Assembly: GCF_020745735.1 (NCBI RefSeq)
Contig: NW_026867501.1
Coordinates: 310,001-374,000 of the forward strand
Length of the DNA: 64,000 bases
Reading direction: 5' to 3'
Source of the DNA: Hemiscyllium ocellatum
Taxonomy: Eukaryota
The translations under genes and the position numbers were made by a program. The notes beneath the pieces were generated by a model. The model made no database searches. It was not told where the DNA came from and saw only the letters and a list, made by a program, of their open reading frames with translations. Shown piece after piece: positions 1,230 to 63,244 of this stretch. Within the stretch, counting starts at the first letter, position 1. Every line of letters starts with the position of its first letter.

Positions 1230-3624
1230 TACCTTGAGACTTCCAACTGATGTCCACGTGAGGGAGTTCCAGACCAATAAACTCAGTCAATAATACAACA
1301 CCCAGGATGAGAATCACAAAATCATTAATGAAATAAAAAAAAACACTCAACAAGATCATGCAAGAAAAATACAGGAGAAATCGCCTTAATTCTTAATTTA
1401 ACTTGCAAAATTCATTTTTAAATAAATTATTGCCTGCTACATTTATGCATGTTCTGTCATGTTATCGTTTTCATATACCTCTGAAATTTACTGTTCATTT
1501 ACATTTGTTATTGATTTACATTTCACAAAGTAAAACTTTGGTAATTCAGTCTCTAGCATGGACTTCCCTCAATTGTCATTGTTTTTTTTTCGATATTTGT
1601 TCATTGTGTGCTGATGATATTCGTAAGCCAATGTTAACATCTAAAATGACTGTACAGTTGCTTCAAGCCCAACACAGACAGCATAAGCATTTCTGTTAGG
1701 AGGACATTATTGACACCTGAGCTTGATCTCGTTCAAAGGGAGCTAGTCCCCATCAGACAGATCTTACAACAACATCTTGTACACAACAATGTTCGTGCAG
1801 AGCATCCTGTAATATTTTCAGAAGATTCCTCAGGAGGTGGATTAGCATGAAATTCCTTTAATTCCATACCTCTTACAGTGCAACAGCATCACTGGATTCC
1901 TCAAGCAATTCTGATAGATAGCAGGAGGGGGAGGTGAGGGGGAAAACAATTTCTGATAGGTGATTCACGTAAAAAATTGAAGCATCTTATCTCTTTCATC
2001 AGGCCCAATTCGATTAAAATGTGAAGGAAATCTCTCCCGAAGTGTGAACTGGAATGACTCATGTTGTCTACATTGCAGTGGAATAATGTGATCTGATAGT
2101 CATCCGAAATACAATGGATACCACAAGAAATAACACAGTGAGCCCCTGATGTAGAACAGATGAGCAATCTATTAGCATTTTTCTGGAGATGTGTTGCCTC
2201 TGAAAGTCTTACATGAAGCATATTAATGTGCTAGTTATATCTAGACATGATATTACCAACCATTCTTATGTTCCTTCAATTGTGGGAAAGATCATGGAAA
2301 AATAAACGAATGAGGATGAAGATCTAACAGGGAGCACACATCTCATGTATGGTGACAGACAATTGCCCAGTTAGAGCTGTTTCTGTTCATTAACAGACAG
2401 ATAATCAATTACTGCTCTGAGAACAGGTCGATAAATACCCAAAAGAACTAGATAAGAGCATCCGAAGAAACAAAATCAGATAATTCATTGCGAAGATGAA
2501 AAGGGATGTCTTCATATCCTAGCCAGCCCTTTTACATCACGTGCAGGGAAGGTTTTATTACTCAACATTTCCTTTGACTATAGTGTATTCCTGGCAGTTC
2601 AGAGTTAACAAAGCATAAAAAGCCCCTCACTTTTTTATTCATTTTCGTTCAAACATGTTGTTTTTCTTTAAATCGGAGCCTTGGCTATTCTGTCACCCAG
2701 CTGTTCTATTCAATCCAAAAACAGGAATTGTTAGAAAAGCTATTATGTGTGGCAGTTTCTGTGAAGAGAAATCAGAATTAACCCTCCCGTTCTGGTGACC
2801 CTTCACCGGAATTGATGCTAGCTAGTAAAATGTCGGATTTTATGCAGAAGCTATGGTGGGGGGAGTGGTTAACGTCTAAATAGTAGATGGGCATAGAACC
2901 AACCGAGAGGGCGATCTGTTGGAAAGACAAAAGAATGGCTAACGATCTGGATATGAGGATTAATACCCGTTAATGAGACAGTTACTGACAAACAATAGGT
3001 AGTGTGCAATCGTAGAATAAACAATAATAATGCCTGTGTGCGGTAAGGGGCTCGGACATAGGAAATTTCAATTGAACTCAATAATGAGTCAAGGGAGCTA
3101 CGAATTCTCCAAGCAGAAAACAGGGTGTTGTGCTCACCACTTGCACTGAGTTTCACTGGTGCATTGCAGCAACCCTGAGACAAGAATGTTGGCAAAGAAC
3201 AGGGCGGTGTACTTGCTATACATGAATGTAAAATGTTGAGTTGTAGTGTATTGCACCCATTTGCAAAAAGCAGCAAGATTATATTCTCCCTGCTATTTTG
3301 AACAAGTGGAGAACAGTGGTTTATTAGATTATTGACTTGTGATTGGATTGGATTGCATTGCCTGAATATTAATCAGATAAACTATTCAAAATTAGTTTCT
3401 ATTTCAATGCTGGAAACTGCAATTCAATGTTTTTGGTGTAAGATGGAATAATCTGTTATCATTGTGTTCGACATTTCCATGCACAAATTTCATGATTATT
3501 ACGAAGAAAGTTATTGCAGAGCTGTCTTCATTTTAAACAATAGAATGACATATAGTGATTAATCAAGACAGTTCAATATTATGCTTAAATTTACCACAAC
3601 TACATTGTTTGAGAATGGCGATAC

Positions 3625-4490
3625 TATTACGGTTATCATACCATTAGGCAGATGGTGTGGACTCTCTTGGTGCACCACTATTTATTTTGCAGGGATAGCA
3701 GTGAGTGATTTAACGTGATTGGGTGCATCCTGAATTGGATCTGTGGTATTGACTTTTGGTACAGTGCTCGGTCCACGACCTCCGCCTATGAACACAACAC
3801 AGTGATCATCTATTCCAGGCGAAATTGCCCTGCCTGGCTGATTGTGCTATTCACTATCGACCATTTCGTGGTGATGTGTTGCCAGAATGAGAAGAGAAGA
3901 TATTGCATCATTAAACCTGTCTCGCTGTTCATCGGAGTGGGTTGTTTCCTGACCTGCATCCTTAGCCTCCCTTCCTATTTTGAAGACTGACTCTTGTACA
4001 AAGTAGACAGAATTACCTCATTCTGAGACTTCATAGACACATGGAAAAAAACTAACCTTCATGGAGGATCTATGAATGGCTGAATCACGTCTTGACGCGT
4101 ATTCTCTCGATCCTCCCCATTCCACTGCTCAATCTCTCGACAGTCAGATACGTCTTGGTGGCCAGTTATACCTGAATGAGACACTATGTTGAGGGAAACC
4201 ATGGTGACCCAGAGATGGCCACCCACAACTGATCCATTTTACTGTGCTTCACCATTTCGCTCAGCTTCATCTTCTTTGGAACATCAATGCCATGCTCTCC
4301 CTCTATGTTTGGTTAGGGCGAGTCCTACTTTAGAGACTTGGATTTCACAGACCCACAATTTCTGCTTCAACAATCGAATAACAAGCTGCAGAGACAACAA
4401 AATCTTCATTTGAGCAATATCCCAGTAGTTTCAAGGCAAACTCAAGAACTTGCTGGTGTCTTCTATCACATGTCTGGCCAGTTACGAATA
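3625..4490 (+). pseudogene. GPR139-like GPCR pseudogene (G1), exon 2 remnant
   Basis: Colinear nucleotide similarity to the intact copy at 20644-21539 (ggtgtggactctcttggtgcaccac; FTIDHFVVMCCQN; DLDFTDPQFLLQ) with several stops and frameshifts. Intron sequence ~3200-3600 and the 3' flank ~4630-4720 also match the intact copy. Confidence 0.9.
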
Positions 4491-5319
4491 ATCTTGTTAT
4501 GTTGTTTTCCTTCCATCAGAGAGGATCCGTATGTCGCACTCTCTCCACCCCCATCCCCCACCACCACCCACGATGGACCCACGTCTCTCCCTCTGTCTCT
4601 CTCTGCCTGTCTCTCTATATCTCGATAGCTCTCTTAAAGTTGACTAACGTTTGTGTGTTCTTGCTTCTCTAATGGAGATATGAACAATACATTCCACAGC
4701 CTTGATACCCGTGTTCGCTAAAACGAACGGATTATGAAAAAAAACGCAAATTGTATGCCGAAGATAGATATGCTAAAACAAGGCCCGTGCCTGTTATCAT
4801 TAATGCAGATTTCCAATGATCCGGCTCATTTCACTTGATATCACCACTTCCTGTCCTTTCTTCTCAGTCACCATTCTTGGGTGACTCAATACCTGATTCG
4901 CTCTCATTTACGTCTCAGGGTTGTTGTATTGATATAATTGAATCTGCCACTTTGTTCGGGTCCTCATGAACATGCCTCAACAATGATCCCGATAGTTTTT
5001 GTCATTTCTCTGGATTGTAGAATCGTGCCATTAGTGATTACGTCCCAATTTAGTTTAAGTGTTTCACAGTCCCAGCAGTTCCAGCCCATTTCGCACGAAC
5101 CACCAAACCCCAAACACACCTGAAGTCGTGCTTTACATTTTCCTTTCCACAAAAAGGTCAAGATTATTTTCGTGATTCTTTTAGTTTCTGTTTCGTTTAA
5201 TATTGTACAAAGTAATCAGAAACGAGGCTTTACTTCCATTTTACATCATTAAGTCACATTTGCCAGTTCCTGGTTGTCAGTTATCTCGTCTTCGGCTGTG
5301 AATATCCATAAGGATAAAT

Positions 5320-5333
5320 GCGCCACCTTGTGG
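5320..5333 (-). promoter_or_regulatory. CTCF-like motif
   Basis: Minus strand reads CCACAAGGTGGCGC, one mismatch to the CCASYAGRKGGCRS core. Motif match only. Confidence 0.4.
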
Positions 5334-6089
5334 TAGATTTGGATCAATTAGGTGTGTCGCCTTTCCATCACTGAATGTACTATATCTGTGATTCATTCTT
5401 CAGTGAAAGATATGTTATCATGAGGATAGTTTGCCCCCCTCCATGGTAAATATTGTAGACCCTGAATTATAAGTTGTTTGTTTTGAAAAATGCTAAATAA
5501 GATAAAAAATATATAATGTTTTTGGAATTTTGATAAATTCGTTGCGTATTGTTCGTACTGAAATTGTGCTTCTAATCACAGAAACTCCAAAATCCAAATT
5601 GTATGAAAATGGAATGCAAAGGTTGACTTGAACTTGTATCTTCAATTTGTCATGGACAGCCACTGAAATGGAAATGACAACATTGTTTTCTCCCCAGGAT
5701 CGTTATTGTTGAATTTCGCCAGCAAAAAGTGCTTTAGTTCAGATCTCCAGTTCATTGTTTTATTGTTTTAGTGTAATCAGTGATAGGAAATGTAATAAAC
5801 GCTTGTTCTGATAATGTCATTGAAAGATTCTGCAATTGAAATATTGCTTTCGAAAGCTTTCGACAATTCGATGAGCTGCACGACGTTAATGATTTCTAAG
5901 TTGCATTTGAAGCACAGGACACTTTTTTTCCTGCACGTCAGACATGCAATTGAATATGGTTTCACCATCGAAGAGGAATCCCAGCCATTTTGTTAGTTTT
6001 CTAGCTGACGTCAGTCACAACAATGGTCAGATATGGAGACTCGCAGAAAACAGATGCATTTAACAATCATAGACGCCCTACAGCGAGAG

Positions 6090-6370
6090 GCAGACCATGT
6101 GGCTCTTCTTGGCCATAACAATCCTCCGAAGAGCATTTCTACCAGACCCACTCCGTCTGTCCTTAATCCTGTATTTTCAGTGGCTCGTGCTATTCACCAA
6201 GACTGCACAACCCCGGGCTCTACGGGCAATATGGCATGGCTAATACACCCAACAGGCATAATTTGGTCTGTGGAAGAAGACAAGTGCATTTGAAGGAAAT
6301 CTAGAGAGACACGGAGAAATTAATCAAACTTCACGGTCGGTCGTCAGAGGATAGAGTCGATTCTTGATTC
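6090..6370 (-). mobile_element. Degenerate HE1-type SINE fragment
   Basis: The reverse complement resembles the body and CR1-derived tail of the SINE at 34650-34967. Confidence 0.5.
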
Positions 6371-6933
6371 TTTTAATGACCGAGTCAGCATGCCGCCCAA
6401 CAGCAACATTTTTATGTGAACAGTTACGTTGGTGGTAATGTCTATCTTTAATCAGAGAGGTTTATTCTGAGACTCTTATATTATCAGAACTGAGCTGGAC
6501 ATGTTTGTCTCTGTGTCGATCGCTGAAATTCATAACAGCCAAATCACATAATCCCTACAATGAGGAAACAAGCCCTTTGACCCAGCAACTACACTTGATC
6601 CTCCAAAGAAGGACCCATCCATACCATTCAACTACTGTACAGTATTTACGGGAATGGGTTGTCAATAGCAATGACAGTTACTTAAGAAAATGATTCATGG
6701 CTGACAATAAAAGTGCCACAGTGAAAAAGAATGATACTAGTAAGGAGTTGAGCCAACCATTCTTTACGCAAAAACTTAAAGAGAGGTTAAGAGGCAAGTG
6801 CAGGGATTGGGGATTCTTTTTTAATTACAATGGAAGATGGAGTTCTACACCAAGAATCAAACAAAATCTCATCTGCTTGTTTAACAAGGTAGTGACCTTT
6901 CAGTATACACTTAATGAGTTGAATATGGAGGGT

Positions 6934-7030
6934 GGGGGGGGGGGGGGGCGGAGAAATATACAGACAGATAAGAAATACAGAGAGGGAGAGAGCGACAGAC
7001 AGACAACAGAGAGAGAAAGAGAGAGAGAGA
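6934..7030. repeat. 15-nt G run followed by (GA)n/(CAGA)n microsatellite
   Basis: Directly visible: G15 at 6934-6948, then agag/acag repeats. Confidence 0.9.
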
Positions 7031-8410
7031 AACCAAACCAGCGATGTTTGTCACGTCTCAGATATAGGGCACCATTTAAAACAGCATTACGAGAGTTCCA
7101 TGTAGTCAATACATACTAACAATGGTTTCTCTGGTATCTCAATGCAATGGTCAACTATTTACTCGCCAGTTTTCGTGCAGTGAGGTTTCTTGGGGTGAAG
7201 TTATCACCAGGAATATTCACATTATACTTACTTTAAAAGTTACAGCGGTCTTGTAAAGTTATTAGTTATTTATCAGAATTGCAGGCTTTCAGGTTAATCC
7301 GATGTTTTTAGATTTATTGTGTCAACAAATTCCTCCAACGATCCCTCCGCATCATCTTCGAAACTCACACACTCTCCAATTCAGGACAAAGACATCAAAG
7401 TTACCTGAGCAACAGAAGCTTCAAAATCCTGGCCAAAGCATACATACCATTCCGAGTTTGAACTTCATAACGATTATTGCACATCCGCCGATTGAAAATC
7501 CTAGCCATCCCTTCTTAATATCATTGGCGTGCACACTCACTAGACTGAAAGTCGGTGGCATCGTGGTAACGTCAGCTGCTCAGATTATGTCTTACTGTTC
7601 ATGAATCCCATCATTCCATCTGGAGGTATTTGGGCCTGAACTTCTCATAATATGCAGTTAGAACCTTGTGCCTGGAAATACCAAGATTTCCAGTTCATTG
7701 GTGTGTTTTGAACAATATATTGTGTCACTTCAGTGAATTCGTTGGTCTGTTAATCAAACACTCGTGCAATGAAGGCAAATTTGGAAAATCCAACTGATTC
7801 CCTCATCCAAACATCGATAAAGGGTAGTTGGCCAAATGTTAAATGAACAATTCCTTGAATATTTTAGCGAGTTAGACATATGTTTAATTAATAAGAGAGC
7901 CAAGGGATATAATAGTAAGGCAGTAAATGGATATTAAGATCATTAAATCATCCATAATGCCAGTGAAAAGCAGAGATCCAATTGGACTTAATGTCCAATA
8001 TCTTGCCCATACATCCTATACTTAATTGCTTTCTAACGGTTATTGATGAAATTCTGGTTGATGTTTATAGACTTAGAAAGTTAACACTTTATGTGCCCAC
8101 ACAGTCACTGGAAACTGATTACACATGCATGTGAATAATCTTCATGCCACTGCTGCCTTCTAGTGGCAGCCAGTTATAATTGCGTTCAGAGAAATTGCAC
8201 AATTTCGCGTCATACAGTCACAGAGATGTACAGAACTGAAAGCGATCTTTTGGTTCAATTCGTCCATGCTTTCCAGATATCCCAAACAAATCTAGATCCA
8301 GCTCGGCGAACAGAACCACTACAACAAGCACCCGAGCTACAAATCTTCGCACAAACTTTGAAATCTAGATCCATTTGAAAGAATTTTGCGCATATCAATC
8401 TAAACCCTTC

Positions 8411-8760
8411 CTATTCATATTCATTCAGATTCTTTTTGAATTTTGTCATTGTACCAGCCTCAAACACTTCCTTCAGAAGTTCATTCCATACGTCTGCAAT
8501 ACCCCTCGTGGAAAAGTTGCCTCTTAAATCCCTTTGAAGTCTTTCTCCTCTCACCTTAAACCTATGCCCTCTATGACTGGGCTCCTCCCTCCCGGAGAAG
8601 CAATCTGGTCTGATCGCCCTATCCATGATCCTCATGATTTTATGAACTTCTAAAACGGAACCCCTCCGCCTCCAAAGCTTCAAGAAAACAGTTCCAGCCT
8701 GTTCAGCCTCTCACTACAGCTCAACTCTGGCAGAATTCTTGTAAATCTTTCGGCAATATG
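8411..8760 (-). mobile_element. CR1 LINE 3' ORF2 fragment
   Basis: ORF ...SHRGHRFKVRGERLQRDLRGNFSTRG..VWNELL resembles the C-terminus of the CR1 ORF2 at 24762-27665. Confidence 0.85.
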
Positions 8761-9189
8761 TTCAGCTTTAAGACAGATGTAACTAATGTAGTCATTAATT
8801 GTATGGGCATTAATTCTTCATTGTTGTAATGATCTTTATATCTATTTAGCAATCGAAATGACTTCAACGAACAAAGTATAATGCAAAAGTGGAGAGAATG
8901 GCTGCAGTGGAGTTGAACAGGGTGCAATTACAAAAGAATGTTTTCATCATCGCACAGTTAGCACAAAAATTATAGGCTGCTCAGACTGTTTGTGTTGTGC
9001 TATTCTATGACTGACTATGACCGCAAGTTGCTTCTCTTGATTGAATCAACAAGAAGTTACGCCACTATCGTTGTTGGTGGTCCTGAGTTATCACACAGTG
9101 ACGTGTACCACTGTACAAATGGTGTACTGACACAAAGACAGAGCACTCCTATAGACTGTGAATTTCTTTTAATAATTCTTTATTCACAT

Positions 9190-10620
9190 GTGAGACTTGG
9201 CGTCACTGGCTGGCCAGTATTGATAGATCGTCCCTATTTGACCTTGAAAAGGTGGTGATGAGCTACCTTCTGAAATCGCTGCAGTACACTTGCAGTAGGA
9301 TAACCTACAATGCTGGTAGGGAGGAAATTCCAAGAGTTTGACCTAACGACTGTGAAGGACCAAGTCCGAGTGATAAGTGGCTTGGAGGGGAACTTGCAGT
9401 TGATGTTGTTCCCAAGTACCTGCTGCCCTTGTCCATCTACATGGACATGCTTGTGGGTTTTCTAGTTGCTTTCTTAGAATGCAGGGTGTAGTTCTGCAGT
9501 GCATCTTGTAAATGGTACATACTGCTGCAACTGCGCATCAGTGGTGGAGGGATTCAATATTTGTATATGTAGTACCAATCAAGTGGGTTGCTTTATCCTG
9601 GATGGTGTCAAGCTTGTTGAGTGTTGATACAGCCGCACGCATCCAGGCAAGAGTGGATTTTTCCATCATACTCGTGACTTGTGCCTTTTAGTTATTGTAT
9701 CGACCTTGAGGTGTCAGAAGGTGAGTTACTTGTCGCAGTATCCCTAGTTTCTGACCTGCTGTTGCGGCCATTGTGTTCATGCGGTGAGTCCAATTGAATT
9801 TCTGCACAATGGCAACCAAGGATGTTGCCAGTGGGGAGTTCTGTGATGGTAGTACCGTTGAACGTCAAGGGGCGTGTTTAGAGTGTCTCTAATAGTTGAT
9901 GATCATTGTCTGCCACTTGTGTGGCGCGAATGTTACTTGCTATTTGTCGATCCAAGCATAGATATTGTGTAGATTGTGTTGCATTTGAGCCCGGACTGCT
10001 TCAGTGCCTGAAGAGTTGCGAATGATGCTGAACACCATGCGATCATCAGCGACCATTCCCACTTCTGAACTTATCACAGATCGTCGATCTGTCGATGAAC
10101 CAGCTAAAGATTGTTAGGTCTAGGACATTCCCCTGAGGGTCTGCTGCAGAGATGTCCTGGAACTGAGATTTCTGACCCTCCACAACCACAACTATCTTCC
10201 TTTCTGCCAGGTGTGTCTGTAACCAGTGGCGTCTTTGCCCGCTGATATCAAATGATTCCAGTTTTGTTAGGGCTCCTTGATGCTCGACTCTGTAAAACGC
10301 GGCCTTGATGTCACGGGCTGTCACTTTCCCCTCATGACTGGAATTTAGCTCTTTCATCCATGTTTGAACCAAGGCTGTAATGAAATCTGGAGCTGAGTGA
10401 CCCTGGTGAAAGCCAAATTGTTTGACACTGAGAACGCGGTTGCTGAGAAAGTGCTGTTAGATCGCATTGGTGATGACCTCTTCCATCACTTTACTGATGA
10501 TGGAGAGGCGACTGTTTGGATGGTAATTGGCCAGGTTGGATTTATCCTTCTTTGTTGTGTACAGGACATACCTGTGCAATTTTCGACATTGTCGTGTAGC
10601 TGCTGATCAGACACTCCCAT
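9190..10620 (-). mobile_element. Old non-LTR retrotransposon (CR1/L2 clade) RT remnant
   Basis: ORF 10046-10372 has DIKAAFYRVEHQG...PQGNVLDLTIFSWFI, which are degenerate RT motifs (DxxxAFD, PQG). Confidence 0.8.
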
Positions 10621-11535
10621 GACTGCTCATGACATTCATCAACAGACTACACATCTTCTGTAACGAAAGAGTTATTCTGACTGTGCAGAATCTAGTAACA
10701 CCTGCAGGGTGCCAAGTTCTATGTACATCCCCTATTCTGCAGAAGCAGATTACACTTGATTCGATCACGCAGAGTCAAGAATATTTCTTTTATGACTCAC
10801 TTTCGAACTAGCAACCTGTCCTTTTTTCTCAGATGTCAGCAGTGGGAGATGAGGAACTCATTAGTCTTTACACGACTTATATATCCAGATCAGGCATTTC
10901 CACAGAGGATGGAAAATGCTCATTTACGCCCTGCCACCAGAAGAAATGTCATGTGACTGAGGCTTTCATCGCTGGCTCTGACTCATTAATTAATCGATAC
11001 AAAATGTCTTTCACTGTTTACCGCTGTTCAGATGTGAGCTCGATCCCGATTTCTTAATGGTATTTTAACGAAGACTGCATTGTCCTGAACCACTCAAATC
11101 TATGATTCACCGTTCAGGGGCTCCAAATATGGAGGTACAAGGGCAGCAGTCAATAACCCGCAACGCGTTTGACATTGTTCAAGTTACCAGAGTGATTGAT
11201 TATTACAATCACGTGGCAAGTTATTGCCTCTCAAACGGAATGCTGCAATCCCCTTTTTCGGTGGAGAATTTTGTTTAACCTAAACTGGTTCATGTATTTT
11301 CTACACCACATCATCACTGAAACAGTGAAACACCATGGGACATTTCAAAAGACATAAAATAAATTATTTCGTTCTCATTCATTGAACTAACAGCACTAGT
11401 TCGTTTCAATAAACGGTTAAGGTTTTATGTTAAATGCGATGCATGAGATATCACCGTGAATTCGCCAGCCTCTTCAGATCCGTTTCTGATCTCACTGCTC
11501 CCTTTACGAATCGTCAGGTTTAGTTGCTCTCTGAG

Positions 11536-11574
11536 AGTTTTTGTAAGGACACAACCCAGTTCTGAATCTCTGTG
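11536..11574 (-). other. 23-RSS of V1
   Basis: Minus strand: CACAGAG (11574-11568), 23-nt spacer, ACAAAAACT (11544-11536). Confidence 0.95.
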
Positions 11575-12014
11575 GGGCTCAGTGCGCAGAAATACATCGC
11601 GAAGTCTGTCAGTTCTGCTGTCAACACTTTCAGCTGGATAGTGCGTTTCACATGATCAAACTCCGAGGAAAACCGGTCTTCTGGATGATTCTCTGTGTTC
11701 GTGATATATTGGTTTCTGTTTAGCAGATACTCCATGGAGCCGTTGGAATGCTGACGGTACCAGAACAGATAAGGATTGCTATTTGATGTAGCTGTGTAAT
11801 TACAGAATAACAGGACATCATCCGCCTCGTTCACTGTGACTGCGGCCGGTGATTGTGACACAGAATCTGCACGACAAACTCCTGTCATAAAATAGGAGTG
11901 AGAATAAATTTTAGAAGTTACTTCGTTACACTTATAGCATAGAATTAGCCCATTCACCTCGAACAATAAACAGAGGAATAAGAGACAGGGAAGATGAACA
12001 AGAATCCATTTCAT
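11575..12014 (-). CDS. Germline TCR alpha/delta-type V gene segment (V1), apparently intact: leader exon to 11958, 76-nt intron 11957-11882, V exon 11881-11575
   Basis: V domain GVCRADSVSQSP...LLFC...LFWYRQ...DRFS...LTDFAMYFCALSP has both Cys and the Trp, with no stops. GT-AG intron and a 23-RSS are present. The CALSP ending is typical of TCR Valpha/delta. The leader phase is ambiguous (see findings). Confidence 0.9.
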
Positions 12015-13499
12015 ACAACTCAGCCATTGCGACAGGCAAGGGCTTCAACAGATGTAATAAAACATCCTTGAAGGCATGGGCCACACCTTTTAAAGAGGTG
12101 AATTCCCATTTTAACTCCCGACATAAAAGGTAAAACTAAAATAAGTCGGTGAGTTTAAAAGTCCGGCCTTTGTCTATTCATCTCAACCTCAGTCCGGTCT
12201 GAAGTCCCAGCTTAACTCTTCCATGTTAGTTCACGCAGACGGGTTCGCTAATTTCTCCTAAACTGTGCTCAGTGTTGGTACAAGTATAGATCTAGATTTT
12301 TTCAATATCGGGACAATGTGTTGCTACTTCTGTGATGCTAGAATTGTTAGAGTACATATAATTCCCAACAAAGCGTTGAAGCATAAAGTTCCACAAGTTG
12401 TGCACCTACCAGTTAGAACAGCTGCAGCTGTGAGAAGTAAACACAGAGCTTTGGGCGACATTTTTTCAGAGATCACTATGAAAATGAACAAAACTGGCCG
12501 AAGCTAAAATTGTTCTCGTCAACAGTTGGGAAATGTTTCAGTTATTTCCGGATTGTTTCTCATTGGTTCATTGTTGGCAAAGATACCAGATGACAGCCAA
12601 TGGACTTCAAGTTCATTTATCCTTGAACCAAACACTTTCAATATCCTACGAACCCCACTTCACACCATGACTTTTGTAAGAAAGGAACAAAATTCTGAAA
12701 ATGGGTCAGTGGACTTGAAATTTTTGACGTTTTTTTTCTTCACAGATATTGTCAAAACTGCTGAGTTTCTCCGGATATTTTCGTTTCTGTCTCACGTTTC
12801 CAGCAAGTGCAATTATCTGCTTTTGGTTTAAATAACAAAGTGAATTTGATCAAGTGACAAAATGATAATATTTAAACGATATGTTGTTCTTTAAATTTTA
12901 TTATTTCTGTAGGCAAAACCAGTGATGGAAAGTACTTCATGTTGTTCCAGTATCAGAACTGGAGTTTCCCAGTGAACAGAGTACCTCGCTGACTGCGAGA
13001 GTTTTCCTGGAACTGATGCAAAGGGCCTGTGTGTCTAAGAAAACAGTCAGAAAAACAAATAAAGAAATAAATGAATGAACAAGTAAGATTTCAATAAATG
13101 TGAAAGTAGAAACGAATTTTTCTTCGACTGCAATTGCTGGTAAGTGCCATTAGGAGGCATAGGGACTCACTGGGTCGCAATGCTGCTTCCCTGCGCTCGA
13201 GATGCAAGTAAAATTTCACCTTCCTGCGACCACCTGCGTCGAGTTTGCACATTCTTACGATGCAGTGGGTGTTCTGATACTCGCCCACAGTTCAGTGATG
13301 TGCAGGCTAGGATGAATGACCGTGGGAAACTTGTGTTTACAGAAATAGAATGGATGTTTTCTGGAATGTAATTGCAATCTACATTCAATTAAACTGAATG
13401 GCCTGCTTCTAGATTCGCGGGATTCAATGGTATCAAAAACTGTCTTGCTTTAACTTAACCTTGCATCATTGCCAATGTACATCATGCATTTATATCAGA

Positions 13500-15830: not shown

Positions 15831-16051
15831 CTTCTATCATGTTTGTAAGGACAAGCAGATATGAGCAGAGAGCAGAAATTGCATTTACAAATGACTTATC
15901 CACGAGTGACTCCATGTATTTTAAAAAAGTCATTGCCAGAAAGTGACTAAGGATGTTTTAATATGATATCAATAACAGTCTGGATGAGACAAAAGCTGTC
16001 ATTTAAAATTAGAGCAGTATCATCTGGCTCTTTTGACCTCTTCCATCCAGC

Positions 16052-16850
16052 TTGATGGCAATCATAATGCTATCCCGAGGTCAGTGTAGACCCTCGCATT
16101 GCATTACCTACGATCTCATAGCGATAGTTATCGCTGCTTTCCTTGTTATTATCACTGGATGCATTCTGAATAGAATCTCCGGCATTTACTATAGATACAC
16201 TATCCTGTCTAATACACTAGTGAGTGTGTGTTTAGTGCAGTGGTGGTTTACATCAACCGAAATGGATAAGTCTGGCTTGCAGTAACCTCCACGATTCAAT
16301 GTTTTGTGGTCATCTCCTGCCAGAGCCTGAGCAGCAAAAACTGCACCGACAAAACTGCTTTGCGCCTCATGGGAGGGATCTGCTCCTTGTTCTGCATCAA
16401 GAACGCACCATTTTACTTTGTCTCACATCCCTTGCTTATACTGGAAGGGATGCTTTCTCTCTATGTCATCAAGACAAGCTTCTACACCTCGCTTGCTTGG
16501 CAGATCTACCGATACCATGACCATATATATCTTAACTCCCGTTCATTATCGTTCTACTGCTCACCGCCCTTACCGTTAGCATCATCATAGAGGCCAAAGG
16601 GCAGACAAAAGGTTCTGAAGCTCTGCATAGTGAAGACAACGAGATGATCAAGCACAATTGTTCCATTGTTCTTCTGTTCCCAATGTCTAACAGCTTTGTA
16701 TTCCTGTGGAGCTTTTATGTCAGACGATTCCTCTACACTTAGGTTCGAAGACAGGACTGCCTTGGTAGTCTGGATTTGGGATGTTTGCCGGCATATTCTG
16801 TTCTATTCGAACAAAATAGAACGTGTCTTCAACTACAGATCTGCAAATAT
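16052..16850 (+). pseudogene. GPR139-like GPCR pseudogene (G3)
   Basis: MAIIMLSRGQCRPSHCITYDLIAIVIAAFLVIITGCILNRIS.. and ..CIKNAPFYFV.. are colinear with the intact copy. Frameshifts and stops are present; exon 1 was not found. Confidence 0.85.
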
Positions 16851-20092: not shown

Positions 20093-21539
20093 ATGCATGG
20101 CCCAGCGAGTGGCCCTTTCTATGCCATTTACTATCCAGCTCTTGCTGCTATTGGTGTCCCTGGTAAGTTACAGATTCCAAATATATGTTTGTTAGTTGAA
20201 AGAAAATCTTTTGTATTAAATTTCAGGAATGACATTTTTTTCTGATCTTCACGACTGAAGGAATTGAGCGCAAGTCCCTATACATGTGTCAAACATTGAG
20301 CTTTCCTCAATTGCGTCCTCTGCAGTACACCGCAACATTCTATCCAAAATGTAATATTGAACAATTATGGAGCAATTGGTTATTACATCATTGAGTTCGT
20401 TATTGTAATATGTAGCATTGCCTGCATATTAATCAGAATAACTGCACAAAATTAAATTCAGTTGTAATGCTGGAAATTACTGATGTATGGAATAATACGC
20501 TATCGTTGCGTTCGATATTCTCATGCACAGATTACATGATAATCCCGAAGAAAATCATTGCAGGTAGGTCATTATTTTAAAGATTATAAGTATATCTAGT
20601 GATTAATCAGGTCCGTTCAATAATACTTCGCAATTTCCCCCAGCCAACCTGCTGGCGATCGTCATACTATTGCGAGGACGGTGTGGACTCTCTGGGTGCA
20701 CCACCTATTACTTGGTGGGGATAGCAGTGAGTGATTTTCTTGTGATCATCACTGGGTGCATCCTGAATCGGATCGGTGGCATTTATTTCCGACACAGCAC
20801 ACTGTCCACGACCACTGCATGTGCAGTCAGCACCGTGATGATCTATACCAGCCGAGATGGCTCAGTCTGGCTGACCGTGGCATTCACCATCGACCGTTTC
20901 GTGGCCATATGCTGCCAGAATATGAAGACCAGGTACTGCACTGTGAAAACTGCATCACTGTTCATTGGAGTAGTTTGTGTCCTGAGCTGTATCAAAAACC
21001 TGCCTTCCTACTTCGTCTACCAGCCCTTGTACATTGTGGACGGGAGGTCCTGGTTCTGTGACTTCAGAGACACGTACTATAACTCACCTGCATGGAAATC
21101 CTATGACTGGCTGAATCACATCTTGACGCCTATTCTCCCGTTCCTTCTTATTCTACTGCTCAATGCCATGACTGTCAGGTACATCTTGGTAGCCAGCAGT
21201 GCCCGAAGGAGGCTTCGGGGATTGGCGAGCCACGGAGACTCAGAAATGGCCAACCGCAAGAGGTCCATCATACTGCTCTTCACTATCTCGCTCAGTTTCC
21301 TCCTTCTATGGGTCACCTATGTCGGGCGCTTCCTCTATGTGCGGGTTACAGGTGAGGCATATTTCAGCGGCTTAGATTTCACTGACCCACAGTTTATTCT
21401 CCAAGAAACGACGAACATGCTGCAAATATTAAGTTCCTGCAACAACGTCTTCATTTATGCAATATCCCAGAACAAATTCCGAGATGAACTGAAGAAAGTG
21501 ATGTTGTCTCCCTTCACAACTCTCGCTGTGTGCAAATAA
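20093..21539 (+). CDS. Intact two-exon class A GPCR, GPR139/GPR142-like, 321 aa (G4): exon 1 20093-20162, intron 20163-20643, exon 2 20644-21539
   Basis: Spliced protein MHGPASGPFYAIYYPALAAIGVP|ANLLAIVIL... with a GTAAGT donor, cccag acceptor and seven hydrophobic segments. Motifs: TM2 IAVSD, TM3 SVWLTVAFTIDRFVAIC, TM6 LLFTISLSFLLLW, TM7 NMLQILSSCNNVFIY. These parallel GPR139 motifs as I recall them (VYYSLLLCLGLPANIL, SIWITVPLTIDRYIAVC, NMLALLNTAINFFLY). Orthology not established. Confidence 0.92.
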
Positions 21540-22769
21540 TGTTTTGACGTGTTCCATCGATCAGAGTGACTCAGTGCATAAAATATTCTCTCCTACTAAA
21601 AACTAAATAATGTTTGTGCGTTTCGTGCTTCACTACCGGAGATATGACCAGTTCCTTTTCCAGCCTTTATATTGCCTGTGATTAAGACAAACAGAAAATA
21701 AAAAGCAGCCGAAGTAGTGTTTTTATGGATGTGAGGCGAAATTGTCTTCTTTGCCTCTGATGACTGCATTATAGTTCTAGTGGTCTCGGCTAAGTCATTT
21801 AATATTCATCTATTTTGCTGCTTCCCTCCTTCCCTCTCAGTTGCCATTCTATTCTTCCTTCCTCCTTCTCCATCATTCGTGTTTCAGGATTATTGCATCT
21901 ATTTATTTGAATCGCACACGTTGCCTTTTACTTTGACATAGACCCGATGAACAGCTCATTACACCCTAAAAAATGTTCTCGACAGTTTTCATGTTCTCAC
22001 TGCATCATACAATCCATGCCTCTCCTGTTAAATCTCAGATTTACTTTTTGCAGCTCCAGAGATCTCGGCGTCTCCATCCCGTCCCAGCCTCTACACAGCA
22101 AACCTTGACATGCAGACATATATCCTGGACCTAAAGTCAAACGTAACTCTCGTTCCTTTAACCACAAGAAATTCAAGGTTATTTTCATGATTTCCTAACA
22201 TTGCGTTTTGATCAATATTCTAAAAAGCAAACAGAAACGATGCTTTGCTTGTACTACAGACAATTAACACATCTGCCAGGTCCTGATTGTTATTCCTCTC
22301 CTTTCCCTGTGTGAATATTGTGAATGGACTAAGGACACAATCTGGTGGTGGTTTTGGAAAATTAAGTCTAAATGTTTAATCAAATAAATTTAATGTTTCT
22401 GCTTTTTTTTTGCAATGAAACCGATATTATCATGAGGACAAACAATTGCTCCTCAATTTCAACGATTGAGGACATCTACATTGTTATTTATCTGTTTTTA
22501 ATCAGACTAATAATTTAATTTTTTTTAAAAATGTGTGTCATACATTCTTCGGAAGTGAACGTCTCCACCAAAGTTTCTTGCGTATTATTCATGCTGTAAT
22601 AGGGCTAGGATTTCTAGAAGTTTCAATATTCATGCAAATGAAAATGAAATGCAACAGGTGAATTGAACACGTTCCTTTAATTTACCATGTTCTGATCGTT
22701 GAGAGCACGGGTAAGTGGAGCTGAGTCCACAAAACAAATCAACAATTAGCTTATTATAAGGCGGAGCAG

Positions 22770-22960
22770 GCTTAAAGCGTCGAAGCCCCTATTCCTGCTC
22801 TTAATTCTAGTGTTCCTATCACAGTCAACTGGAACACGCAGTTTTCTGATGAAGAGTCACCGGCCTCAAAATTCTTACTCTGCTTTCTCCCAACAGCTGC
22901 TGCCAGATCTCCTGAGTTGCGCCAGCAACTTGAGTTTAGTTTCAGATCTTCAGCATGCAC
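22770..22960 (-). repeat. Short interspersed shark repeat (similar copies near 2.7, 12.7, 46.3, 59.2, 61.7 and 63.5 kb)
   Basis: Recurring core aactcag...tctggcagca(g)ctgt.g.agagaaagcagagt seen at several positions. Confidence 0.55.
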
Positions 22961-23618
22961 AGCACGTTATTTTATTGTTATGGTACAGACAATAATATGA
23001 AATACCAATTAACGATTGTTCTGATATAATGTTTGAAAGTTCTATCCAGGAAGTGGACTTTGACAAAACACTTTTTTGTTTGCATATCTCGATGAGTTGG
23101 CAATTTACACGACTTTAATCTTTCCTGTGGTGTATCTATATGCTGCACAGTACAGTTTTTTCAACACTTAACACCGACAGGTCGGCGTTATTCTGGACCT
23201 GCAAATCGACAACGTGACATTTTGGAACTGTTATCATGAAGATGCAATGGCAGTACACAACAACCCACAATGTGGAGGTTGTTTCAGTGTCTCATTATTA
23301 GAATTTTGTGACAGGTCATTGTATCTCAAACAGGATACTACAGTTCCCTGTTTTGCCTGAAGATTTTGCTGGATCAAAACGAGTCCCTGAATTTTCTATC
23401 GCACGTCATTCCTAAAACAATAAAACGTTTTGGAACACCATGAAGGATGCAAAATAAATTAGTTGTTTTCTGTTCTCGAAATTGACGGCATTCCTTTCAA
23501 TAATAGATTTATACCAATTAAAGTGTTGTGTCCGAATGATAAGTATCAGCTATCACCTTGAACTCCGGAACCACATTAGATCCACTCCTGATCTCAATGT
23601 TTGCCTAGACGCTCCGAG

Positions 23619-23657
23619 AGTTTTTGTACACGGTCAGCCAAGTTCTGAGTCTCTGTG
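23619..23657 (-). other. 23-RSS of V2 (intact)
   Basis: CACAGAG (23657-23651), 23-nt spacer, ACAAAAACT (23627-23619). Confidence 0.95.
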
Positions 23658-43177: not shown

Positions 43178-45564
43178 ATGCACGCGCCAGTCATTGCCCC
43201 CTTCTTTCTCATTTGCTATTCAATTCTTGCAGTTATTGGAGCCCCTGGTAAGACACTGACGCTCGAGAAAATCGTTCTCCCAATACTTTATCTGCAAAAA
43301 ATTATTTTTTTTCACTTTCAGGATCCTGCAGATCTTTTAAAATATTGAGCGTTTTGATTTTAAGTGACTTCAACCGGATTCCTGTGCATACATTGCATTT
43401 TGGATCCGATAGTCCCAAGGCAAATAATCGTGCACTACTTCCAATTTCATTTTAATACAAGGCAAGCTGTTCTTGTTTCTTGTATGTTGTGTATTTATTG
43501 GAAAATGGTCCAGTAGACGCTGAATTGTGAGAAACAACTATGCATGAATATTAAATTGTAATTATTGTTATATATACTATCCATTCCAATTCAGCAGAAT
43601 GCAATCGAGCCTTTCAGTTGATTGTGTGTTGAATACTTTGTCACAGTGTAGTGAAATGCTCTTCTGCATGGACCGCATTGCAGTATTTGAAGATGATTTA
43701 TTTTGTGGTAGTACTTTACGAGATGTTTATTATTTTAAATAAACGTTTAGTGATCATATTAATCTACAGTGTGCGCTGTGGAAGGATATGTTAAAATATA
43801 GAATTCCCAATGGATGGCACCAGTGGTTTCAGGAATACATTCAATTTAATCCAAAGACGTCAGTGGAGATGCAATTTTTCAGCCATTGGTATTTTGATTC
43901 TCTGCAGCAAAGTTTCGAGTATTTTGGATAATTGTATTTTTATATAATTACCCAGAAAAGCGTTGTTCACAACTACGAGAAAGTGTAGTGGCGTTTCGCC
44001 TCGAAATGCCTCACTGTATGTAGCATTCACCAGAACAACTTCAGCAAACCGATTTAGACTCGAGTAATGTGAGATATTGCCAAACGTTTTGATCAATGTA
44101 ACATCTGATAGAAGGGCGCAGAAGCAGAACAGCTGAGGTGACAATTCCAGATAGTGTTACGAGTGGCTTTATGAGTTAAATCTTTAAGTGACACAGTTCG
44201 TAGGATCAATTATAGGAGACACGGGAAACAGATTGAAGTTAGCTGAGATTTCAGATCATTTTGCATGATTTTCTGAAACCGATGTGGTGAGTCATCAGAA
44301 GTTCAGAAAAGTCGTAGGTTGATATTATAAAGAATGAGACATCACTCGTAAGGAGGTCCATCTTTATGAGTTGAAGGTTGACCGGGGTTTGGTATGAATA
44401 ATTCATGGCAATAACATTACTTCATTTGTTCCTGAATTGTACAAATCACAACTGGTATTTATTTATTGACCAGAGAGTGATGTTCATTCCCAGGACTGAT
44501 TATATTGATTGGTGTTTGATGCTGACAATGGATGTCCAATATTTGTCAACAGTTTCAGAAAATGCAGAGACTCGAAGTGGCAGGTTGATGATTGAAGAAT
44601 GCACAAAGCAGCAATTAGTGTTTGGAATGCGTTCAGTTATAGCTTTCTCTTTTAATCTCTCACAGCCAACTTGCTGGGAATCATAGTCCTATGTCGAGGA
44701 AGGTGCGGTCTCTCCCGGTGCATCACCTACTACCTGGTGGCGATCGCAGTGACTGATTTCCTTGTCATCATCTTTGCAGTCATCCTCAACCGAATCAGCC
44801 GCTTCTACTTCCGGGAAAGTGCCTTGTCTACCACTCCTGCATGCACTCTCAGCATCGTGGTAGTCTTTGCCATCTGGGATTGTTCGGTCTGGCTGACAGT
44901 TGCCTTTACCTTCGACCGTTTTGTGGCCATCTGTTGTCAGAAATTGAAGACCAGGTACTGCACAGAGAAGATGGCGTCATTGGTCATCGGGATAGTTTGT
45001 GCATTGTGCTGCGTCAAGAACATCCCATTCTACTTTATCTATGAGCCCATATACATCTTAGATGGGATATCCTGGTTTTGCAACATCAAAGCCACTTACT
45101 ACATCTAGCCAGCTTGGCAGGTTTATAGTTGGTTCTTCCAGATGTATACTCCCTTTCTCCCGTTCTTTGCCATTCTGCTGCTCAATGTCCTGACCATAAG
45201 ACAGATCGTAGTGGCCAACAGAGCCCGCAGAAGGATCCGGAGCACAGAGAAGAAGCATGACTCAGAGATGGATAACCGCAAGAGGTCAATTATTCTGCTG
45301 TTCGCTATCTCTTTCAGTTTTCTCCTCCTGTGGGCCCCTCTTGTTGGACATTTCATCTTCACGAAGCTTACAGCTGAGGGTTACTATGGTGGGCTTGATT
45401 TCAATGACCCTCGGTATATCTTCCAAGAGGCAACCAATACACTTCAGTTACTAAGTTCCTGCAACAACGTCTTCATTTACACAATATCTCAGAATATGTT
45501 TCGAGAGGATTTGAAGAATGTTCTGATCTACCGCTTTGCCACTCTCATTAATTGCTTTAGATAG
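43178..45564 (+). pseudogene. GPR139-like GPCR (G5) with one in-frame nonsense codon: exon 1 43178-43247, exon 2 44666-45564
   Basis: Exon 1 MHAPVIAPFFLICYSILAVIGAP ends at GTAAGA; acceptor cacag. ORFs 44671-45108 and 45142-45564 share a frame and are separated only by TAG at 45106-45108, where G4 has Ser (YYNSPAW vs YYI*PAW). Confidence 0.92.
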
Positions 45565-53399: not shown

Positions 53400-54281
53400 T
53401 GCAAGTTGATGATAATCGTAAACATGTCCTGAAGATGGTGCAGACTCCCACGTTGTATCACATACTATCTGATGGCGATAGGTTTCACGGATTTCCTTGT
53501 TATTATCACTGGGTGCATTCTGATTAGAATCGGCCACATTTATCTTCGATACACAATCTGATCTTTTACACGAGCGTGTGCGTTTAACGCAAGATTGGTC
53601 TACATCAGCCATGATGGATCAGTCTGGCTGATAGTGGCGTTCAGCATTGATTGTTTTGTGACAATCATTTGCCCGATTCTGAGTACCAGATACTGCAAGG
53701 AGAAAACTGCATTGCTCGTCATAGGCGTGATCTGATCCTTGTTCTGCAGCAAGAACGTCGCTTTGCACTTTGTCTCTCAACCCTTGGCTATACTGGATGG
53801 GATGCCTTCGTCCTGTGGCATTGAGCCCATCTTCTTCGCTTCACCTGTTTGGCAGGCCTACCACTACGGTGGCCGTATCTTAACTCCATTTCTCCCGTTC
53901 TTTCTCATTCTACTGCCCAACGTCCTCACTGTTAGGCATATCTCAGAAGTTACCGTGTCACATAAGAGGCTCAGTGGCTCTCAGAATGGTGATGATCAAG
54001 AGATGGCCAAACGCAAAAGGCCCATTGTTTTGCTGTATGATATCTCCAACAGTTTTCTACTCCTGTCAGGCACATGTGTAGGACGATTCCTCTACATTCA
54101 GGTTACAGGAGAGGATTACATTGGTGGCCAAGATTTTAATGACCCACAATACATCCTCTCAGAGATGACAAATATGCGTCAGTTATTCATTTCCTGCATA
54201 AACTTCTTCATGTATGTGCTAGCTCAGAAAAAGTCCCGAGAGGAATTGAAGGAGGTGCTAATGCATCCTATTACCTTATAA
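53400..54281 (+). pseudogene. GPR139-like GPCR pseudogene (G6)
   Basis: ITYYLMAIGFTDFLVIITGCIL.., stops, then ORF 53739-54281 with LTPFLPFFLILL and GQDFNDPQYIL. Closest to G3. Confidence 0.9.
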
Positions 54282-55010: not shown

Positions 55011-57319
55011 ATTCTTCTTAGGATCATGAACTCAAATTGACTTTTCATAGCATATCCGTTAACAAAGTATGTCTTGTTCATGGCATTGAAATCATGATAA
55101 TGTATATTGCATGAATCTGTTTAAAAACATAACTGCACTGGAACCAGACTCAGTTTACATGAGTACATCAAGAGTACATCAAGTGATACCTCTGGTTATA
55201 ATACAGCAAAACTTGACTCAATTTAACCTAAAAGCTTGCCCAGTTACTGCATAGGAGCATATGTCATAGGACTCGAATATGTGTCCATTCGTGCATACTG
55301 CGATAATCAACAGGATAATGTCTGGTAAGGCTTTTCTCTCATTTCCACCTTTGGATTCGGTGTCGTCATTACTGGAATTGCATCCAATCAAAGCACTGGC
55401 CTAAAGTATCTTGTTGGGCAAGTGTTTTCATACAGTGATGGCCCTTTGCGGGATGCACAAGTCACTGCTCCAGTGATTTAAAAACGCAGTGAACAGTTTC
55501 CTTGATTTCTGATGCAACTTCAATTTTTTATATGTTTCAACTTGCGAAGTATTTTGCTGGATTCACACCCGTTCTTTCTTCGAATTTTGGATTTCTACAT
55601 TAGAATTAATGTTCCACATCAGGATTGTAACAAATTTACACTTGATCTGTAACTTGAAATTCACAGATATGAATGATTGCGCTGGAATTTCCTCTGGATT
55701 TGACTTACAATATTCCAATGTGAACTTTTCTGATTGATATTCCAAACAGTTTTATTAATTGCACGGGTTAATATTCTGCAGACAGAGCGGCTAGTAGAAT
55801 GACAATTCAGTTAACCTGGAATTACATAGTTCATTTAATGGCGGACGTGAAACGGTAAACAATTGATATGACTTAAGATCAACAATCTTTGATATCGTTT
55901 AGAAGTGTATTGCCAGAGTTCCCTGGTGTGCATGTGTATCCTGACAAAGCGGTTGATTCTTAATTAACCTCCGAATATATTTTTCAATGCACAAAATTCA
56001 AAGGGCAATTAGGGAAAGGCAAAAATGCTGCCTTTACCAGTGACAACTGCTGGAGATTTCAGGGATACTGCTTTTTCTCGTAGTTTGATCACGTGAAACG
56101 CTCGTTCCAGGTGAAACTGTTGAAAACAGAACTCACAAACTCTGCAGTACATTGCTCCTCTCAGAGACCTATTCAAACCAGAATTGAAATGGTTCATCTT
56201 TTGACCGTACATATTCAAGCAAAACTTCAATATTTATAAATATATTCTTAAAATGGATTGATGCTGCCAGTTTAGGAAATGAAAAATAAAGAACGTGTTT
56301 TGGGCCTTTCTAAAAGTCTCGAAGTTTTTCCCCATTAAACAAATGGGGCGCTGTAGAAAACCTAAGAACCAGTTTAGTAGAGTAAAATCTTACTGCAAGT
56401 AACTGCAGCACCGATTCGAGTAACATTGAAATGTTACATGGTTCCAATACGAAAATACTTGAAGAGACAGAATCATGTCAAACACAAAACAGTGGCATGG
56501 TGTCATTGTATCACTTTAAACAGAAGAGGGAATAACAGGTATGCAGATGTAGAGAGAGAGATTCTGAGCCTCCTATTCATCAGGTTGAAAGTCATTCATT
56601 CAAAAGTCTCTCCAGGACAAAGGCTTTCACATTGCAGACAGAGATGATAACACACACACACACACAAACCTATCGACCAGCAACATTTCATCACTTTAAC
56701 AAGAGAGACAGATAAAGGGAAAGAGATGCTGACTCTTTTCTTCAGATAAAGCTCCGAAACAACAGACAATCCATTGCACACAGGTACAGATATAGAAACA
56801 TACACAAACATAGAAACGCACATGAATATACACTAAATACAAAAATACGTACTTACAAACACACATGGATAGTTACGAGCAGAGATACAGAAACACACAG
56901 ATAGAGAAACAAAAACACAAATATATGGACGCATGTACTCACTGTCTGGGTATCTCTGACAGTCCATCTCTCGAATTTCCCTTGTGCAATCTTGAAAATG
57001 TCAAACTTCGGAGACATTCTGAGAATAGAGTTCATGAAGCGCGTTCCCTGTGGGCTGGAATGTTGCTAACTGAGCTCACATTCTCCGGATAATGCGTCAT
57101 TAATTTAGGAATGAAGTGAGGAAACATTACTTCGCACAAATGATTATGAAACTTTGTAATTCTAAATTAAATTTGTAATGAATCAACAAAGTAATTCCAC
57201 CGCAATTATAAGATATAAATAGACATCTTTACTCTTGGTGTGAAACTAATGAACGGTCACACCAGGGAAAGAGTGATTTGCCACACAATTCCCCGGTCAC
57301 TCTGCATTTTATTCTGTAT

Positions 57320-60656: not shown

Positions 60657-60830
60657 TCCTAAAGATGTGCAGGTCAGGTGAATTGACTGTGCTAAATTAC
60701 CGTAGTGTTAGGTACGTAAGGGGTAAATGTAAGGGAATGGGTCTGGGTGGGTTACCCTTTAGTGGTCAGTGTGGACTTGTTGGGCTGAAGGGCCTGTTTC
60801 ATTTCTGTAGGAAATCTAATCTAATCTAAA
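60657..60830 (+). mobile_element. HE1-type SINE 3' half
   Basis: aaagatgtgcaggtcaggtgaattg...gaagggcctgtttc...(taatc)n tail. Confidence 0.88.
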
Positions 60831-61789: not shown

Positions 61790-61870
61790 TTTCTCCTCAG
61801 TGTGGATTTGTTGATGTTTCAGTGTGGATGACTGAGTGAATCTCTTCCACAGTTCAGGCAGGTCAAAAGC
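61790..61870 (-). pseudogene. Single C2H2 finger remnant
   Basis: Minus strand reads TCLNCG / KRFTQSSTLKHQQIHTEEK with a 1-nt gap. Confidence 0.7.
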
Positions 61871-61935
61871 TTTGTTTCAGTTTGATACCACCAAACCCCT
61901 ACGGCGACAATAAATCCTGCAGTTTCTGAACAAAG

Positions 61936-63244
61936 ATGCATGAGCCAGCCATTGCGCCATTCCTCATTTTCTATTCAATTGTTGCAGCTATCGCTGGCCC
62001 TGGTGTTACTGATGTTCGAGAGAATCGATTAATTCATCATGTTTTTCCAGAAATTTATTCTTTTCCCTTCCAGAATTCGGTAGCATTTTCTCAACATGCA
62101 ACTCCTTGATTTTAAGGCACATCCACAGGTCTCCAATCCGTATAATACATCATGCAATAATATCTGTGCTACGGCAAATCATTATGAATTGCTTCCGATT
62201 TCAGTATAATAAAGAGAACTGCGTTATTCAATTTTGAATGCTGTAAACTTTTCTGAAATCATTTACAATTATTAGATATCTCGTGCAAAATTAGAAACTT
62301 AGTGCAGTATCAATCATCTAGCAATACACGTGATGAAGTAACAGCAGTCCGAAATCTTCTTATTTCAAACAAAACCGTTGGAAAATAACCTGGGCTACTG
62401 TCATATCTGACTTTCTCCACCCCAGTCTAACATTGCATCATCACATCATCTATCAATGAGATCAGTCCACGAAATGAAATCGCTCTCCAGTGACTGAGTC
62501 AATGTTAAGTAGCCACTTGTCTAATTCGGAATAACAAGAATAATGTAGTTGCCATGAACATATTCATATGAAGCACAGGCCATGTTTCATACCACATCGT
62601 GTTAAATCGCAGACAACTTTCAGGCAATTATAATCCTATTGCAAGAATGGTGCTGTCTCTCGAGGTGTATCACCTACTACCTGGTGGCAATTACAGTGAG
62701 TGATTTCCTCGTCTTGTCCACCATTCCTGTGTGCACTCTTAGCATCGTATTGGTCAATGCCACTCTGGATTGCTCGGTCTGGCTGACAGTGGCCTTTACC
62801 ATCGATCGCTTCGCAGCCATCTGCTACCAGAAACAGAAGACCAGCTACAACAAAGAGCAGGCTGCATCACTGGTCAGAGAAATGGTCTGTGTTCTGAGTT
62901 GCCTCAAGATCATGCCTTTGTGCTTTAAATTTGTTCATTTTTTGATGGGGTACCCTAACTTTACGTATGCGTGGCTGAAAGCTAAGAGTGACTTTGATGG
63001 ACTGGATTTCAGTAAACCGGAGTACATCTTTGATGAGAACACAAACATACAGTTCGCATTTGTTTATTCATTTCTTTCCTCACTGTTTTGCTCTTCATGT
63101 CATTTTCCCATCTCTTCACTCCTTTCTCACAGCATTCCTTCCACGTTTCCGTCAGCACTGTCTCCCTGTTTGCCGTTATTTCTTTTCCGAGGGCTGTCTT
63201 ATCTGCTCATTCTAGTCTCCAGTTCACGATGTTGTGCAGAGTAA
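61936..63244 (+). pseudogene. Internally deleted GPR139-like GPCR (G7) whose spliced frame is still open (~232 aa): exon 1 61936-62002, exon 2 62613-63244
   Basis: Exon 1 MHEPAIAPFLIFYSIVAAIAGP ends at GTGTTA; acceptor cgcag. Exon 2 reads (D)NFQAIIILLQEWCCLSRCITYYLVAITVSDFLV/LSTIPVC...TIDRFAAIC...DGLDFSKPEYIF, then a non-homologous tail. Confidence 0.85.

Follow-up and report, generated by a model that had tools for sequence, protein, structure and literature searches.

Why should genes for G-protein-coupled receptors (GPCRs) lie among the variable (V) segments of a T-cell receptor (TCR) locus? The question is posed by a 64-kb stretch of shark DNA (positions 310,001 to 374,000 of contig NW_026867501.1; the whole of this stretch is hereafter called the window), along which GPCR and V copies follow one another in the order V0 G1 V1 G3 G4 V2 G5 G6 G7. 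One GPCR and one V segment were duplicated here together, as a single block. We consider it probable that the association as a whole is one of passive hitch-hiking, with birth-and-death turnover, in a duplication-prone V array of the TCR alpha/delta locus (TRA/TRD).

A GPCR and a V segment duplicated as one block

GPCR loci were located by tblastn, with the longest GPCR open reading frame (ORF; that of the intact copy) and two full-length family proteins as queries. Exactly six loci were found, every one on the + strand, alternating with V0 on the + strand and V1 and V2 on the - strand, as had been described in an initial annotation made from the sequence alone; that annotation had these three V segments right, and did not list an additional fragment on the + strand which retains framework region 3 (FR3) only. 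The matches have E-values from 1e-23 to 1e-170, which excludes chance. The features, including the two copies of the duplicated block (termed cassettes), are as follows; RSS stands for recombination signal sequence.

770-1201 (+): V0, a TCR V pseudogene; leader exon 770-815, V exon from 887; RSS degenerate
3216-12620 (no strand assigned): cassette copy 1, made up of G1 (exon 2 only), a spacer and V1; collinear with 20278-24629
3617-4479 (+): G1, a decayed pseudogene of GPCR subfamily A with at least five stops and three frame changes
11536-12027 (-): V1, a TCR alpha/delta-type V segment; V exon 11881-11575 open, with C23, W41 and YFCAL
16040-16835 (+): G3, a decayed pseudogene of subfamily B with frameshifts and stops
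20093-21539 (+): G4, an intact two-exon gene encoding 321 amino acids; exon 1 20093-20162, exon 2 20644-21539
20278-24629 (no strand assigned): cassette copy 2, made up of G4 exon 2, a spacer and V2
23619-24091 (-): V2, a V pseudogene; TAA in framework region 2 (WYR*), leader with a 2-nt insertion and a stop
43178-45564 (+): G5, subfamily C; exon 1 43178-43247 intact, with its donor; exon 2 44666-45564
53439-54275 (+): G6, a pseudogene of subfamily B with two in-frame stops
56072-56236 (+): V fragment, FR3 only, of V1/V2 type, with a stop; orientation opposite to that of V1 and V2
61936-63049 (+): G7, decayed, subfamily C; exon 1 remnant 61936-62001, exon 2 pieces 62615-62932 and 62957-63049

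In a sensitive self-comparison, the GPCR bodies of the two cassette copies (3216-4521 and 20278-21566) are 70% identical; four patches of the spacer are 68-77% identical, and the V segment together with its upstream region (11191-12620 against 23286-24629) is 68-69% identical. The two intervals are a single duplicated block, holding a GPCR on the + strand and a convergent V segment on the - strand, and sensitive blastn detected no extension of the homology past 12620 and 24629. Cassette copy 1 has an extra 5.4 kb (5831-11191), parts of which also occur downstream of the whale-shark orthologue of G4; because the whale shark shares these parts, it was probably unit 2 (G4/V2) that lost this DNA.

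The left breakpoint of the cassette homology falls within the G4 intron, and no exon 1 of G1 was found. For these two reasons the new GPCR copy, G1, was most likely incomplete from birth, without exon 1. Today the V segment survives in unit 1 (V1), where the GPCR is dead, and the GPCR survives in unit 2 (G4), where the V segment is dead. The duplication is evidently an old event, as the two units have diverged from each other about as far as the window has diverged from the whale shark in non-coding flanks (72.8% identity over 3.5 kb).

Co-duplication is demonstrated for this one GPCR/V pair only (G1-V1 / G4-V2). G3 and G6 are paralogues whose similarity takes in about 2 kb of upstream DNA, and the similarity between the flanks of G5 and G7 includes exon 1; by sensitive blastn, no V segment was co-duplicated with either pair. 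The suggestion in the initial annotation that GPCRs and V segments had been co-duplicated is therefore borne out for one block and not for the G3/G6 and G5/G7 pairs. Because the block carried GPCR exon 2 only, and because one unit kept its V segment and the other its GPCR, the pattern points to hitch-hiking and not to joint functional expansion.

The window has zero runs of N and a vertebrate-type base composition. No joining (J) or constant (C) segment lies within its 64 kb, and Pfam matches to its remaining long ORFs are confined to reverse-transcriptase and endonuclease pieces of long interspersed elements (LINEs). At 24679-32371, starting 50 bp past the end of the V2 cassette (24629), a head-to-head pair of CR1-type LINE copies forms a 7.7-kb palindrome, the arms of which are 98.9% identical and each carry a GDSL-lipase-like ORF1 and an endonuclease/reverse-transcriptase ORF2.

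State of the GPCR copies and V segments

Five of the six GPCRs in the window are pseudogenes, as are three of the four V segments. Birth-and-death evolution, proposed at the outset for this array, is seen in both families, and the original count of one intact, two nearly intact and three decayed GPCR copies agrees with ours: G4 is intact, G5 has one stop and G6 two, and G1, G3 and G7 are decayed. A single TAG at 45106-45108 is all that interrupts exon 2 of G5, and exon 2 of G7 has large internal deletions. Exon 1 of G6 was searched for in the window and not found.

The splice sites of G4 are of GT/AG type, with the donor GT closing exon 1 and a pyrimidine tract and AG preceding exon 2, and its protein matches Pfam 7tm_1 (E = 2e-19). 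It is 96% identical to one epaulette-shark protein and 89.6% identical to its whale-shark orthologue. Against that orthologue the nonsynonymous divergence (dN) is 0.056 and the synonymous divergence (dS) 0.45; the resulting dN/dS of 0.12 indicates that G4 is a working gene under purifying selection. G5, likewise, is 95% identical to an intact epaulette-shark protein. These two epaulette-shark proteins lie on one 6.18-Mb scaffold, and neither is the window's own protein; the window may come from a close relative or from the other haplotype, or else the genome contains two copies of a block, at least 24 kb long, with both genes.

A FastTree tree was built from the six window copies, with 120 relatives and three sequences as outgroups; its pseudogene branches are long. 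G1 and G4 group with the G4 orthologues (support 100), G3 with G6 (support 98), and G5 and G7 fall in a third clade (support 100). All three groups contain orthologues from other species.

V1 has a V-set domain (Pfam, E = 1e-11), and TCR alpha chains make up almost all of its top matches to solved structures (E about 1e-15). A 23-RSS, with a 23-bp spacer, directly follows its V exon at 11574-11536 (CACAGAG-23-ACAAAAACT), and the corresponding site of V2 at 23657-23619 is conserved, with the same CACAGAG heptamer, 23-bp spacer and ACAAAAACT. From the V-set domain, the 23-RSSs and the TCR alpha matches, the V segments interleaved with the GPCRs are assigned to the TCR alpha/delta type, and the window would accordingly be a stretch of a shark TCR alpha/delta V-gene array. 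V0 is disabled by an in-frame TGA at 1000-1002 and by a frameshift between about 1003 and 1043. An RSS-like site on the - strand just upstream of G1 (3428-3466; CACAATG, a 22/23-bp spacer and an A-rich nonamer) has no V coding end adjoining it, and is probably due to chance, given that the window contains about 15 loose matches of a comparable kind.

V1 is the only one of the four V segments that is not plainly dead, and its leader (11958-12027, - strand) presents a difficulty. The hydrophobic frame runs for 57 nt from an ATG to a strong donor and ends in phase 0, whereas the acceptor of the V exon needs phase 1; with canonical splice sites the hydrophobic leader frame is thus out of phase with the V exon, and for this reason the function of V1 is uncertain. 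The hydrophobic frame nonetheless appears to be the selected one, because the leader differences between V1 and its bamboo-shark paralogue avoid codon position 2 of that frame (MKWILVHLPCLLFL...). With an upstream ATG at 12027 the phase is restored, but the signal peptide so encoded is poor. The frame left by retaining the 76-nt leader intron unspliced is open throughout. The bamboo-shark paralogue (L002:7050-7200) matches these leader and intron lengths, with ACG in place of the leader ATG.

The receptor family and its distribution among sharks and skates

The initial annotation took the window's GPCRs for an expanded GPR139-like family. A database search returned 891 relatives at E<=1e-3; the best 120 are without exception from sharks, skates and rays, and nearly every one bears 'probable G-protein coupled receptor 139' as an automatic name. 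When representatives at 50% identity were searched exhaustively, 103 clusters came out at E<=1e-30. Outside elasmobranchs, the family comes closest to single 'GPR139-like' proteins of salamanders (33% identity), coelacanth (32%) and teleosts (26-29%), at 110-155 bits. Human GPR139 itself scores 42.6 bits against a single family sequence, barely above LPAR6 or PrRPR (40 bits). With a profile of 18 family members, GPR139 comes first among solved structures (83.5 bits, E = 1e-22), followed by CCR1, NTSR1 and PrRPR at about 60 bits.

GPR139 and GPR142 are class-A receptors for aromatic amino acids. GPR139 has two exons, as do the shark genes, and has in common with the shark family a TIDR[Y/F]xAxC motif at the end of transmembrane helix (TM) 3 and a proline-less N-x-F-x-Y in TM7. 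The two differ in that GPR139 has DRY where the shark family has DRF, and in that GPR139 is present as one copy in mammals and the shark family as hundreds of copies in elasmobranchs. These comparisons indicate a separate, hugely expanded elasmobranch clade of which GPR139 is the nearest characterised, though distant, relative. 'GPR139-like' is a fair nearest-neighbour label; an expansion of true GPR139 was rejected, given the low score of the human protein, the closer salamander, coelacanth and teleost proteins, and the clade that the family forms on its own.

Family members are located on many contigs and chromosomes per species. Those closest to G4 are gathered mainly on a single small chromosome, 11.7 Mb long in the whale shark and 16.4 Mb in the zebra shark; in epaulette and bamboo shark they are found additionally on several other large chromosomes. 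We sampled about 20 kb per locus in other species, covering orectolobiform sharks and skates, and detected V segments with a home-made hidden Markov model (HMM) tuned to one V family, so that negative V results are weak.

The zebra-shark locus has an apparently intact V segment 5.5 kb from a GPCR (Pfam V-set, YFCAMA, CACAGCG-23-ACATAAACG) and also a V pseudogene of the V1/V2 type, the two lying 5-8 kb from the GPCR. The intact segment (L006:19509-19917, + strand) belongs to a different V family (...MYFCAMA), carries a 23-RSS and is oriented as its neighbouring GPCR is, unlike the convergent G(+)/V(-) pairs of the window. Of the two V loci sampled in bamboo shark, one has a decayed GPCR at a distance of 8 kb. 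In the whale shark, family members were sampled at 1.70, 4.78 and 5.59 Mb of the 11.7-Mb chromosome, and V-like remnants, though weak, lie within 10 kb of two of these three. The GPCRs of the two skate loci stand alone or beside a zinc-finger gene, and the one-family HMM detected no V segment there. In a strict scan for an RSS and Y-x-C, clean V ends turned up in the window and in bamboo and zebra shark only; the whale-shark and skate loci gave none.

The adjacency that the initial annotation had proposed to seek at orthologous loci of other chondrichthyans was found again in zebra and bamboo shark and, in weak form, in whale shark, and was not seen at the two skate loci. GPCR/V adjacency is thus shared among orectolobiform sharks, and is demonstrated within orectolobiforms only. 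In thorny skate (L007:21116-22153, + strand), two paired family GPCRs have as their neighbour a C2H2 zinc-finger gene of about 11 fingers; no V segment was detected there, which suggests that not all clusters of the family are inside TCR loci.

Hitch-hiking, its rivals and known systems

If the association is one of hitch-hiking, members of a large, elasmobranch-expanded family of two-exon class-A GPCRs would have become lodged inside a V array that evolves by segmental duplication and decay, so that DNA between V segments is copied and lost alongside them. One such event copied a block of GPCR exon 2, spacer and convergent V segment; the new GPCR copy, most likely without exon 1 from the start, died, and in the other copy the V segment died while G4 stayed under purifying selection. 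The remaining GPCR copies represent two further old subfamilies, mostly reduced to pseudogenes. We infer that the association is passive in this sense and that, should V-J joining in T cells delete the GPCRs, their loss would be an incidental effect serving no function.

Several points weigh against this reading or limit its reach. With about 20 kb per locus and a V detector for one family, the extent and age of the association are poorly bounded, and the placement of the window in TRA/TRD rests on the type of its V segments. All six GPCRs have the same orientation, which could hint at more than chance, and a role of the GPCRs in lymphocytes may be possible.

A first alternative is that the GPCRs belong to an unrecognised chemosensory repertoire of elasmobranchs, partly lodged in the TRA/TRD array, whose function is sensory or at any rate non-lymphoid and for which the location is irrelevant. 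It would be compatible with hitch-hiking, to which it adds a functional claim about the family; as such we regard it as possible but, for now, doubtful. The GPCRs form a large family with deep subfamilies and numerous pseudogenes, and the invariant residues of the family cluster in the signalling motifs of TM2, TM3 and TM7 while the remainder are variable. The published olfactory-receptor (OR), TAAR and ORA repertoires of sharks are tiny (PMC11979771), and in our literature search, which lay mostly outside subscription journals, we found no description of this GPCR family or of its position in shark TCR loci. However, of the 50 genes most specific to olfactory tissue or brain in a catshark study, none is a GPCR, and large GPCR expansions can equally serve peptide or metabolite sensing in other tissues.

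A second alternative is functional coupling, in which the embedded GPCRs share the regulation of the TCR locus and are expressed in T cells, and in which deletion that depends on V usage gives clones different GPCR complements, with biological consequences. The geometry allows for such deletion: V1 and V2 are on the - strand with their RSSs on the low-coordinate side, and if J-C lies to the left, use of V2 or of any more distal - strand V would remove G4, whereas use of V1 would keep it. This prediction of the initial annotation is correct provided that J-C is left of the window, and clone-specific deletion of G4 would then follow from ordinary V(D)J mechanics. G4 is, moreover, intact and constrained. 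Against coupling stand the five dead GPCRs and three dead V segments of the window, a co-duplicated GPCR copy that most likely lacked exon 1 from birth, and the presence of the family on many other contigs. A gene in the deletion path of TCR alpha is in any case a poor candidate for a function in mature T cells, because TCR alpha loci rearrange repeatedly and on both alleles. The mammalian analogues, olfactory-receptor genes among TRAV segments and trypsinogens in TRB, are deleted likewise, and we know of no consequence of their loss. We therefore judge coupling very unlikely. The narrower proposal that members embedded in the array are expressed in the T lineage, and that V(D)J deletion makes the GPCR content vary by clone with V usage, is if anything more improbable; were it true, T cells would have a second layer of receptors, somatically variegated and coupled to the TCR.

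Finally, an assembly artefact, in which repeats were mis-joined from separate GPCR and V arrays so as to create a false interleaving, could be suspected in a repeat-rich region with a 7.7-kb LINE palindrome, but was rejected as almost certainly wrong, since the copies are mutually 67-76% identical and far too diverged for collapse or mis-joining, GPCR-V adjacency is seen again in the independent zebra-shark and bamboo-shark assemblies, no N runs interrupt the window, and the G4 region is collinear with whale-shark DNA across 3.5 kb.

Passive hitch-hiking has precedents in mammals. In human, OR10G2 lies between TRAV1-1 and TRAV1-2 and OR4E2 between TRAV1-2 and TRAV2, and three Olfr genes lie between mouse TRAV1 and TRAV2, with synteny conserved to sheep (PMC4574546). 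The mouse genes are Olfr1507-1509, at the 5' end of mammalian TRA/TRD. In mammals as in sharks, class-A GPCR genes with birth-and-death evolution stand between TCR alpha V segments where distal V-J joining would delete them, and the synteny is common to related species (PMC4574546). The shark arrangement differs in that its receptors belong to a GPR139-related family and not to the olfactory receptors, in that most of its copies are pseudogenes, in that there are many more copies and these lie deeper in the array (mammals have two or three at the edge), and in that a GPCR-plus-V block was duplicated as a unit.

The trypsinogen genes in TRB (PMC8945572) are a further parallel, being a non-immune multigene family within a TCR locus that varies in copy number and is deleted by V(D)J recombination in T cells (PMC8945572). 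Unlike the shark GPCRs, they encode proteases, lie mainly between the last V and D-J-C, and are not interleaved with V segments cassette by cassette. That non-immune GPCRs occur in a TCR array was already known; what sets the shark locus apart is that its GPCRs are of another family, that the arrangement is far more extensive, and that duplication of a GPCR and a V segment as one unit is demonstrated.

As it stands, the finding offers no new immune mechanism and nothing that links these receptors to T-cell function. It would be the second, independent class-A GPCR multigene family inside a TCR alpha/delta V array, after the mammalian olfactory receptors, and it illustrates how the turnover of V arrays drags bystander genes along. 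It also carries two warnings for annotation: 'probable GPR139' labels in shark genomes conceal a distinct family, and anyone mapping shark TCR loci should be prepared for many genes other than those of the TCR. The finding points, beyond the locus itself, to a very large shark receptor family that we did not find described in the searchable literature; this family, which may be a sensory repertoire that has gone unrecognised, is perhaps the lead of greater interest.

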